A stretch of 64,000 bases of DNA from Octopus bimaculoides (taxonomy: Eukaryota): assembly GCF_001194135.2 (NCBI RefSeq), contig NC_068981.1, positions 154,454,507-154,518,506 of the forward strand, in the 5' to 3' direction. The notes beneath the pieces are model-generated. The model worked only from the letters and a program-made list of their open reading frames with translations. It did not search any database and was not told the origin of the DNA. Position 1 is the stretch's first letter; each line of letters starts with the position of its first letter. Positions 12,557-15,456 of the stretch are shown piece after piece. Made by a program: the position numbers and the translations under genes.

Positions 12557-12623
12557 TCATATTTCTCCATCTGAAGGAGTTGGTCGGTCATCTTTCTTTT
12601 TACCTTCTTCTTCAGCTCGTTTT
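12557..12623 (-). CDS. INVS: Inversin putative terminal coding exon
   Basis: aacattacAG|A AAA CGA ... ATA TGA; phase 2 fits the previous exon; KRAEEEGKKKDDRPTPSDGEI* aligns to human KKREEENKRKE and then stops. Confidence 0.85.
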
Positions 12624-12917
12624 CTGTAATGTTAAAACAGACAATTTAAACAACTTGGTTTCATATGAATTATTCTAGAATCAAGCAATTAAGCAAGCAT
12701 ATTATTATCCTGAAATACATAGATACAGACAGATACTTATTTATTATTAATTCAGTTCTCAGATATCCTTATTGTTTTTTTTTGTTTTTTTTTGCAATGA
12801 TTATTTTGCAATCAAAACTGTCATAATCATCATGAAAGATGAAAATGAAACAGAAAAATTAAGAGTAAATAATACACACACACACATTTGTGTGTGTGTA
12901 TGTGTGTGTGTATGTAT

Positions 12918-13134
12918 TCTCTTTTACTCTTTTATTTGTTTCAGTCATTTGAATGCAGCCATGCTGGAGCACCACCTTTAGTTAAACAAATCAATCCCAA
13001 AACTTATTCTTTGTAAGTCTAGTACTTATTCTATCGGTCTCTTTTGCCAAACTGCTAAGTTACGGGGGTTGTAAACACACCAGCATCAGTTATCAAGCGA
13101 TGGTGGGGGGACAAACACAAACATACACACATAT

Positions 13135-13179
<45 letters not shown>

Positions 13180-13472
13180 NNNNNNNNNNNNNNNNNNNNN
13201 NNNNNNNNNNNNNNNNNNNNNNNNNNNNNNNNNNNNNNNNNNNNNNNNNNNNNNNNNNNNNNNNNNNNNNNNNNNNNNNNNNNNNNNNNNNNNNNNNNNN
13301 NNNNNNNNNNNNNNNNNNNNNNNNNNNNNNNNNNNNNNNNNNNNNNNNNNNNNNNNNNNNNNNNNNNNNNNNNNNNNNNNNNNNNNNNNNNNNNNNNNNN
13401 NNNNNNNNNNNNNNNNNNNNNNNNNNNNNNNNNNNNNNNNNNNNNNNNNNNNNNNNNNNNNNNNNNNNNNNN

Positions 13473-13510
<38 letters not shown>

Positions 13511-13662
13511 GCTTCCTTCAGTTTCCATCTACCAAATCCACTCACAAGGCTTTGATCAGCCTGAGGCTATAGTAGAAGACACTTGCCCAAGGTGCCACAC
13601 AGTGGGACTGAACCCGGAACCATGTGGTAGGTAAGCAAGCTACTTACCACACAACCACTCCT
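12918..13662 (-). mobile_element. SINE family D, full length, internal microsatellite spans a gap
   Basis: Tail cttttactcttttatttgtttcagtcatt... and head gggactgaacccggaaccatgtgg...cttaccacac; repeated at 24121, 46792 and 56296. Confidence 0.9.
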
Positions 13663-14273
13663 ATATATATATTAAATTTTCTGTTGTATTTACTTAACTT
13701 TATTGTAGTTTTTTTATGTATTCATATTTATTTACTGACATTGCTTCATTTATGCACTCCGTATGTAGTAATATTGGTACTTGCAAAATCCTTTTACTCT
13801 TGGCACAAGGGCTGAAATTTGGGGGGAGGGGGGCAGTCGATTAGATCGACCCCATATAATGAAACTATTTGCTATTTATAGCAATATCTGGAGTTTTAAC
13901 CTGCCATGAAATGTCTTGAGGTGTAATCTGTCTGTCATGTTATAGTGTAGTGATATTTATGGGTTTATATATATATATAAATATATATATTGATAAGTAT
14001 ATTTATTTATATATGTATGGCAGATATTGTGGCATTGCTTATATAACTAACACAGATTATGACACAGCAGTCAGCTAATGGAATAAACATCTATTCTCTC
14101 ACATCATTTTTCTTATCTGGTCAATTTTAATTCCTATTCCCCATCTTTGAGACTTCTGGATTTTCAGAATGATGGTGTAGTTACATCCTAGCCTTAATCA
14201 TGGTCTCGATAGACACGTACCAGGCAGGGCCTCACAGAGATTCTTTGAATTCCTACACACACACTCACTCACT

Positions 14274-14319
<46 letters not shown>

Positions 14320-14376
14320 AGTATATATTTATTTGAAAAAATGAATAGAAGTGGCTTTTCTGATAATTTTTCCACT

Positions 14377-14496
14377 TAGAAACTCTGCCAAATCAGATTG
14401 GAGCCTGGTGTAGCCATCTGGCTCACCAGTCCTCAGTCAAATCGTCCAACCCATGCTAGCATAGAAAGCAGACGTTAAACGATGATGATGATGATG
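14377..14496 (+). mobile_element. Family E 3' tail with (GAT)n
   Basis: aactctgccaaatcagattggagcctgg...ccaacccatgctagcatagaaagcagacgttaaacgatgatg. Confidence 0.85.
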
Positions 14497-15364
14497 CTCA
14501 TAAGTTATTAGGTGTTTACAATCTAATTACTAAAGAGGAAAAATTAACAGAAAAGCCTATTCAATCTCTGGTGACCAAAATGTCTTGTAGCTACAGATTC
14601 AAGGATGTGAGGAAGTGACATATGAAATAATTTTGCTGGGGAACAAGTAAGTGTTGCTGACAAGAAAAGCATCCATGCTAGCTTAGAACATCTAATCTAA
14701 GCTATCATGGAGAAATGGTCATTCTTCCACACTGAAAAACAGACAAACAATGGAACATAAAATCCATGGCTTCACTTATTTTTGTTAATAGAAAGCTGCA
14801 CTTTCTCTTTATATATACAAATATCATTTAATGAATACAGGAATTATATATGAGATATTTCAAGTTTCATGCCACATTTAGAGCATTAACTGGACAGACT
14901 TGTATAATGTATCTTGCACAGTCCATCAACCAGAAATCTTTCAGGTTCACACTCAAGCCATCTCCATACATACATACTTATATATATTTATAATAATGAA
15001 CTTTTACTTAGCTTCTATTATATTTAACCCACATAGCTTTATCAGAAGACATTAATTGTGATGCAGTTAGAGTGGGAGTGAACCAAGAAACACATGGTTA
15101 TGAAGCAAACTTCTTAACCACCGTGTAACAAAAAATTAAACAATAAAACTCAATGAAAAAAGTTTTCGTATTTATCTACTTGCAGAAATAAGTCAATCTC
15201 ACAAGCAATTATTTATAACAAAAGAACTTAGTAATTCTCCACTTACTGATTACTTAAGCTGTGATTAAGTGTCTAATTATTAATGCAACTTGTGTCTTTA
15301 AAAAGTATTCAAATTAAAATTAGTTCATTTGTTATTTACAAATTGACTGTATTTTATAACTCAC

Positions 15365-15456
15365 CTGGCCACTTCTTTCTTTAGCTGTTCATGTTTCATA
15401 AGAAGACGTTTTCTCTCTGTGAAAGTCTTCCGGACACGATAACCCCGAAAGGAAGA
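15365..15456 (-). CDS. INVS: Inversin exon (IQ motif 1, basic coiled segment)
   Basis: ctatgttgatAG|TCT TCC ... GCC AG|GTgagt; encodes SSFRGYRVRKTFTERKRLLMKHEQLKKEVA versus human AVYKGYKVRKAFRDRKNLLMKHEQLRKDAA. Confidence 0.95.

Follow-up and report, generated by a model that had tools for sequence, protein, structure and literature searches.

The window analysed here is a stretch of 64,000 nucleotides (nt) from Octopus bimaculoides (NCBI RefSeq assembly GCF_001194135.2, contig NC_068981.1, positions 154,454,507 to 154,518,506 of the forward strand), and all positions given below are those of the window. Its minus strand carries the five 3'-terminal exons of a mollusc inversin (INVS/NPHP2) gene, which converges with a villin-headpiece gene. 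The span 12557-15456, with which a preliminary description of this DNA was concerned, lies within the inversin gene. In the simplest reading of the sequence, which we consider probable, if not strongly so, the locus encodes an inversin that has the ankyrin domain and the first IQ motif (IQ1), and ends 21 residues into the exon that follows IQ1.

Structure and identity of the inversin gene

When spliced together, the four 3'-most exons give an in-frame coding sequence of 384 nt (127 amino acids, aa, plus stop), and all junctions are canonical (Table 1). The spliced reading is ...IQ1...KKEVAR-KRAEEEGKKKDDRPTPSDGEI-TGA, in which the AG left over at the end of the IQ1 exon and the first A of the last exon make up the Arg codon. 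The splice sites, the phase and the in-frame coding sequence thus confirm that, as the preliminary description had it, IQ1 is followed by a phase-compatible exon ending in TGA. The three exons upstream of the IQ1 exon were located by tblastn with the complete inversin open reading frame (ORF) of another lophotrochozoan (L008); for the ANK15 exon the identity was 79% (E 9e-13), and the exon with the end of the ankyrin domain reads RYTPLDYAL...IQDIAAQKIQ.

Table 1. Features of the inversin locus (a slash marks an exon-intron junction)
Feature	Position	Strand	Remarks
ANK15 exon	57462-57558	-	RTALQCAAYGGFVNCMSMLMEHMADPNVQDFE; acceptor tttgtcag/G, donor GAG/gtaaaa
ANK16 exon	44966-45072	-	GKTATHWACRRGHLDAVKLLMQYGALPNYMDFTED + CG of Arg; donor TCG/gtaggc
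Exon with ankyrin domain end and first half of IQ1	18712-18829	-	RYTPLDYALMEEHHDVAQYMIEQGALSIIGIQDIAAQKIQ; donor CAG/gtaaac
IQ1 exon	15365-15456	-	SSFRGYRVRKTFTERKRLLMKHEQLKKEVA + AG; acceptor ttgatag/TCTTCC, donor GCCAG/gtgagt, phase 2
Last coding segment	12557-12623	-	A + KRAEEEGKKKDDRPTPSDGEI + TGA; stop 12559-12557; acceptor ttttaacattacag/A
ATTAAA, possible poly(A) signal	12415-12420	-	136 nt past stop
Assembly gap (N)	13180-13472		in last intron; microsatellite core of SINE-like repeat ~12920-13680
913-N gap	5273-6185		only sizeable unread stretch between stop and convergent gene

The composite protein matched the Pfam Ank family with an E value of 2.7e-20; of the 14-16 ankyrin repeats that characterize the N-terminal part of inversins, only ANK15 and ANK16 are in the window, the remainder of the gene lying past position 64000. 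IQ1 directly follows the last ankyrin repeat as IQDIAAQKIQSSFRGYRVRK, split over two exons, and scored 20.2 bits with Pfam IQ (cut-off 20.3). Over 149 aa the composite is 62% identical to mammalian INVS (1060 aa), collinearly from ANK15 to IQ1, and over the same length it is 78% identical to the inversin-like protein of Pomacea. In the search of the whole library, inversins or inversin-like proteins (P0083, P0100, P0107, P0134, P0149) were the only ones to match query residues 2-154 in a single stretch; the search of the representative library was dominated by giant ankyrin proteins, and was useful only for a few collinear inversin matches. The post-IQ1 segment LLMKHEQL[KR]K[DE]AA[KR]-K[KR]AxEE..K[KR]K is present as LLMKHEQLKKEVARKRAEEEGKKKDD, matching Aplysia, Pomacea, bivalves, Lingula and mammals. 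These comparisons identify the gene as an inversin orthologue.

The end of the coding sequence lies in an exon that is itself conserved. The segment that molluscan inversins conserve after IQ1 is seen here as KRAEEEGKKKDD, which is present only once in the window; the pattern [KR][KR]A[AEGT]E[EG].[KR][KR] was likewise found once across the six frames of the 64 kb, at the last exon, and in none of 100 local shuffles. The exon is homologous to KRAAEEGKKSEDD of Aplysia and to GCTGAAGAAGGTAAAAAG of the Pomacea mRNA; in the alignment of Schenkelaars et al. the Aplysia inversin is given as ...MKHEKLKEAARKRAAEEGKKSEDDQTVRK... (PMC4818920, supplementary Fig. S2.4). The same segment stands right after IQ1 in the inversins of Pomacea, Batillaria, Physella, Lymnaea, bivalves, Lingula, nemerteans and an annelid (RefSeq and transcript-derived sequences), therefore the last exon is a true orthologue of the post-IQ1 exon. 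A homologue search with a short query returned ORF fragments only, and none of them covered the tail. Contigs of possible relatives (L003, L004-L007, L013), with an exon identity of 77-83%, end before the last exon.

It is very improbable that the window carries a decaying inversin paralogue or pseudogene, with an intact gene elsewhere. A truncated 3' end would fit a partial duplicate, and the window does not reach the 5' part of the gene, but the five exons are intact, have canonical splice sites and correct phases, and contain no frameshift or internal stop. The high identity to the Pomacea protein also argues against decay.

The intron between the ANK16 exon and the next exon is 26 kb long (18830-44965), and the homologous intron of Patella (L012) is about 0.6 kb. 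It holds transposable-element-like fragments, with ORFs near 42063-43028 and 31286-31486 that had no Pfam match. A gap of 715 N (56663-57377) starts 85 nt downstream of the ANK15 exon, in the intron; the exon is complete, with both splice sites.

The stop codon and the DNA beyond it

The stretch from the conserved segment (codon 7) to the TGA lacks any GT or GC, and so any potential donor. The sole GT of the last exon, at 12602-12601, is part of Gly-Lys codons, GAA GAA GGT AAA AAG (GAAG GTAAAA). Identical nucleotides, GAAGAAGGTAAAAAG, are kept as coding in a spliced mRNA contig of Pomacea (L010). GGTAAAAAG is coding in the Pomacea mRNA, and the equivalent residues GKKSEDHQKRD... are found in a full-length, 889-aa caenogastropod transcript (P0223). 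Because this GT is read as coding in the mRNAs of orthologues, we assign only a minor probability to use of the internal donor. Its use as the main donor, which would create a 20-nt micro-exon, was rejected on the same ground. A 52-nt "exitron" reaching from the internal GT to TGCAG/GAC past the stop is too short and its product would be meaningless, and this is also true of its Pomacea equivalent. Adenosine-to-inosine (A/I) editing of TGA to TGG would merely add 14 residues before a TAA. Past DDR, the two remaining frames give KMTDQLLQMEKYDAGLFFW... and a stop-rich sequence, neither of them coding-like, thus a single indel would not restore the linker, and rescue of the tail by a frameshift was ruled out.

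The possible poly(A) signal listed in Table 1 is followed by an AATAAA at about 11683, 873 nt past the stop. It must be noted that such hexamers are weak evidence, because they are frequent in this AT-rich DNA.

The last intron contains an assembly gap (Table 1), which is separated from the acceptor of the last exon by 557 nt and from the IQ1 donor by 1893 nt. The flanks of this gap (to 13179 and from 13473) are the left and right halves of one repeat resembling a short interspersed element (SINE). The window has four more copies (24122-24525, 46788-47219, 21198-21419 and 56312-56660), and in these the two halves are directly adjacent, collinear and in the same orientation. Since the flanks match adjoining halves, the gap replaces the internal (CA)n/(TA)n microsatellite of the repeat, and the join across it is continuous and non-coding. 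The gap is irrelevant to the reading frame, which depends on the splice phases. The SINE-like repeat with its internal (CA)n/(TA)n is about 400 nt long, and a further copy was seen at 59057-59229.

We consider it very improbable that the stop is an artefact, i.e. that the exon in reality continues into the linker and has been cut short by a base error, an indel or mis-assembly at this place. The sequence is a gapped draft (3600 N in 64 kb), and the stop falls in the poorly conserved, low-complexity linker, where errors would be inconspicuous. Yet each of the three frames runs into a stop within about 45 codons, none of them is linker-like, and no single substitution or indel rescues the reading. 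Moreover, 6.4 kb of unbroken sequence past the stop has no INVS-like coding capacity, and the join across the nearby gap is validated by the repeat halves.

The C-terminus ancestral for lophotrochozoans was defined from the literature (PMC4818920) and from two database searches. It consists, in this order, of a linker of about 100-130 aa, the second IQ motif (IQ2; AARIIQRAWR), AALTIQLAWRKYYRRKLL, W.P..KQ.AL..IY, RP.W..IPSPAA.SYNFAV.QY and a terminal FSYNM/L. A profile hidden Markov model of linker, IQ2 and C-terminal module was built from eleven tails, and it recognized its positive controls, namely L008 at E 5e-68, L009 at 7e-43, and the initial linker exon of the bivalve contigs L001/L002 at 1e-4. 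In all frames of the readable window the profile had no match; the best hit, with E 6.8, was a low-complexity sequence on the plus, that is the wrong, strand. The conserved module (AALTIQLAWRKY ... FSYNM/L; a ninein-like domain in vertebrates) was not found in the readable window. As for IQ2, a six-frame search with an IQ regular expression gave only chance matches unrelated to IQ motifs, and neither tblastn nor the profiles detected it in the readable window. The statement in the preliminary description that no further INVS-like exon occurs down to the headpiece gene thus holds, by profile and tblastn, for all readable bases. A tblastn search of the window and the comparison loci with the human IQ2/C-terminus gave no match; this search is uninformative because the region is poorly conserved, and the query was replaced by sequences from PMC4818920 and from database matches. 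Pfam searches with the long downstream ORFs 9595-10236 and 4069-4362 yielded nothing relevant, nor did a literature search for inversin in octopus.

The last exon of the convergent villin-headpiece gene is at 1060-1147 on the plus strand (...NMTKAEYYALPVWKQSKLKQDIGLF-stop; Pfam VHP, E 6e-12). The inversin stop and the headpiece stop (1147) are 11.4 kb apart, and 923 bases of this interval are N. Nearly all of these belong to the 913-N gap, bounded by a repeat (4939-5149) and by an ORF on the minus strand (6218-6421). This ORF, LQFPVSLSFAMTINKLQGQTF..., adjoins the gap and has no Pfam match; we take it to resemble the C-terminal motif of PIF1/Helitron helicases.

Comparison with other inversins

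The length survey of lophotrochozoan inversins proposed in the preliminary description has been carried out. Full-length proteins (Mya, Pinctada, Haliotis, Lingula, Lineus) have 879-953 aa, and there are several shorter gastropod models that end before IQ2: Pomacea with 663, 683 and 700 aa, Batillaria with 703, Physella with 765 and Lymnaea with 810 aa. The full-length proteins and the Aplysia Invs (Schenkelaars et al. 2016) share with the window gene the ankyrin domain, IQ1 and the KRAxEE..KK segment. These proteins then continue with the linker, IQ2 and the C-terminal module, which starts with AALTIQLAWRKY, none of which was found in the readable window.

A parallel comes from Pomacea canaliculata. 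Its inversin-like isoforms X1-X3 (XP_025099561/571/577; 700, 683 and 663 aa) end 38 aa past KRAEEGKKSDD. An RNA contig from the Logan collection (SRR3401656, L010; 2166 nt) contains a complete spliced ORF of 655 aa, which ends with ...KRAEEGKKSDDHRRDAEDNGDSFIERQPSVACEHPPFLENPEIYK-TAA and is followed by 93 nt of untranslated region. The genomic terminal exon (L011, 51559-51705) is collinear with this contig, an AATAAA overlaps the TAA, and no C-terminal module was found within 10 kb downstream of the stop. As in the window, the terminal exon starts with GCTGAAGAAGGTAAAAAG and the ORF stops in the exon after IQ1. The two tails differ: the 38 aa that follow GKKSDD in Pomacea are unrelated to the RPTPSDGEI of the window, thus the truncations look independent. 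A further difference is that the Pomacea short form is supported by an RNA contig, whereas that of the window is predicted from genome sequence.

In Patella vulgata (L012, OW026356.2, 1-14641) inversin is annotated as two genes on the same strand. The first is an 883-aa N-terminal model with ankyrin domain, IQ1 and linker; its last exon is part of an ORF of 282 codons, which includes the linker exon and closes with TAG at 6964-6966. This stop is genuine and no donor adjoins it. In the window, too, the part with the ankyrin domain and IQ1 runs into a stop, but no linker precedes it. The second gene, about 3 kb further on, encodes a 200-aa "inversin" (XP_050388479) with IQ2 and the C-terminal module, and has its ATG exon at 10001 (MPVTRPKGKSG/gtaagt). 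The peptide of this exon echoes the ...VVPKGK-stop end of the upstream gene. A module gene of this type was not seen in the readable bases within 12.5 kb past the window stop. The Patella locus may represent a gene fission, and it shows that in a mollusc the two halves of inversin can be annotated, and are perhaps expressed, separately. Similar stand-alone module proteins of 212-214 aa exist in Elysia and Plakobranchus. Some of the split or short mollusc models may be annotation artefacts.

Vertebrate inversins (about 1060-1065 aa) are collinear with the window gene over ANK15, ANK16, IQ1 and a KKREEENKRKE-like segment. They continue for some 450 residues with a nuclear localization signal, D-box 2, IQ2 and a ninein-like domain (PMC7202064); no counterpart of this C-terminal part was found in the readable window. 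The inversin family has been described as having 1-5 IQ motifs, and the ancestral lophotrochozoan C-terminus is a distinct conserved module, for which Schenkelaars et al. saw no vertebrate counterpart (PMC4818920).

Residue 150 of the composite protein aligns with residue 605 of the 1060-aa INVS, so the preliminary description was right in placing the end of the protein at about human residue 615. It was also right about R603X, documented in the literature as a truncation allele of NPHP2 in which Wnt inhibition is lost (PMC4883026). The human truncation alleles R603X and Q671X have a similar end point, around residue 615 of the mammalian protein. There is an important difference: the human alleles are loss-of-function disease alleles, the C-terminus being needed for Wnt inhibition (PMC4883026), whereas the short form of the window would be the wild type. 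Of the idea that the octopus protein is a natural counterpart of the vertebrate truncation alleles, the position stands. The rest is analogy, because the ancestral invertebrate C-terminus differs from that of vertebrates (PMC4818920). Nor is the short form confined to this lineage.

Interpretation of the short form

The suggestion that this lineage may use an inversin with ankyrin domain and IQ1 only is favoured by the orthologous last exon, the in-frame TGA, the lack of a module in the readable window and the Pomacea precedent; these do not extend to lineage-wide use of the short form or to loss of the module. In the encoded protein, the ankyrin domain and IQ1 would be followed only by a short acidic/basic tail. 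Transcripts would end at this locus, perhaps at the ATTAAA past the stop, and the product would keep the roles that the ankyrin domain and IQ1 have in vertebrates, i.e. scaffolding of partners and calmodulin binding. It would be without IQ2 and the C-terminal module, the latter two being either lost or encoded separately.

Several observations weigh against such a protein. Most lophotrochozoan inversins, with their 879-953 aa, have the module, therefore its loss would be a derived state. Some of the short gastropod models may be truncations introduced by annotation; Batillaria, annotated with 703 aa, compares with an 889-aa transcript of a close relative. The internal AAG/GTAAAA of the last exon has the same form as the genuine donor of the ANK15 exon, GAG/GTAAAA, therefore its use as an alternative 5' splice site is conceivable. 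The introns of this gene are up to 26 kb long, and only 12.5 kb of sequence, with 923 bases N, lies past the stop. Finally, the reading is a prediction from the genome sequence as assembled.

A rival reading, favoured by the form of the internal GT, the intron sizes and the presence of the module in most relatives, is that a full-length isoform exists, with the module located beyond the start of the window (the headpiece gene being nested or interposed) or in the 913-N gap. The module would be reached by skipping of the last exon or by splicing from the internal AAG/GTAAAA, and the short form would be a minor isoform of the intronic-polyadenylation type. The module is a single exon of 471 nt in one compact genome (L008), which makes the 913-N gap a conceivable hiding place, as an exon of this size would fit. 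However, in Patella it is made up of five exons over 2.5 kb, too large for the gap in a genome with large introns, and the gap has a repeat on one side and a presumably helicase-like ORF next to the other. Exon skipping would delete the conserved KRAEEEGKK, and orthologue mRNAs, one of them full-length, read through the candidate donor as coding sequence. On balance we regard a full-length isoform as unlikely.

The short inversin, if it is what the locus encodes, would fit a wider scheme, which we put forward only tentatively and hold to be somewhat doubtful. Molluscan inversin may have come apart repeatedly into a scaffold and a separable module, independently in Pomacea and in the lineage of the window, with the two-gene arrangement of Patella as an intermediate, and this lineage would run on the scaffold alone. 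The module that would be lost or unlinked here is the one needed in vertebrates for targeting to the ciliary compartment and for Wnt inhibition. A study of Shiba et al. from 2009 reportedly found the vertebrate C-terminus to be required for placement in the inversin compartment. The C-terminus is described as required for this placement also in PMC7202064, and as required for Dishevelled/Wnt control in PMC4883026. If the short form is real, ankyrin domain and IQ1 would be a self-sufficient inversin unit in some animals; in man, truncation at the same point is pathogenic (R603X). It would offer a natural experiment on how the functions of inversin are divided between its two halves, and a caution against carrying INVS domain requirements across phyla. 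The significance is tempered by the fact that inversins with one IQ motif are within the described range of 1-5 (PMC4818920), and that short gastropod models are already in RefSeq.

Two minor observations concern other sequences met in this work. A mariner-like transposase fragment lies at 52196-52495 on the minus strand of the window (Pfam Transposase_1, E 0.002, under the cut-off). The contigs L001 and L002 (ENA ERZ25069866) are two bivalve-type inversin 3' regions in one assembly. Their exons are identical, but the intron that follows IQ1 differs in length between the copies (4.3 kb and 0.4 kb), and the RYTPLD exon is repeated upstream in the form of partial pseudo-exons; the two copies may be haplotigs or the result of a local duplication.

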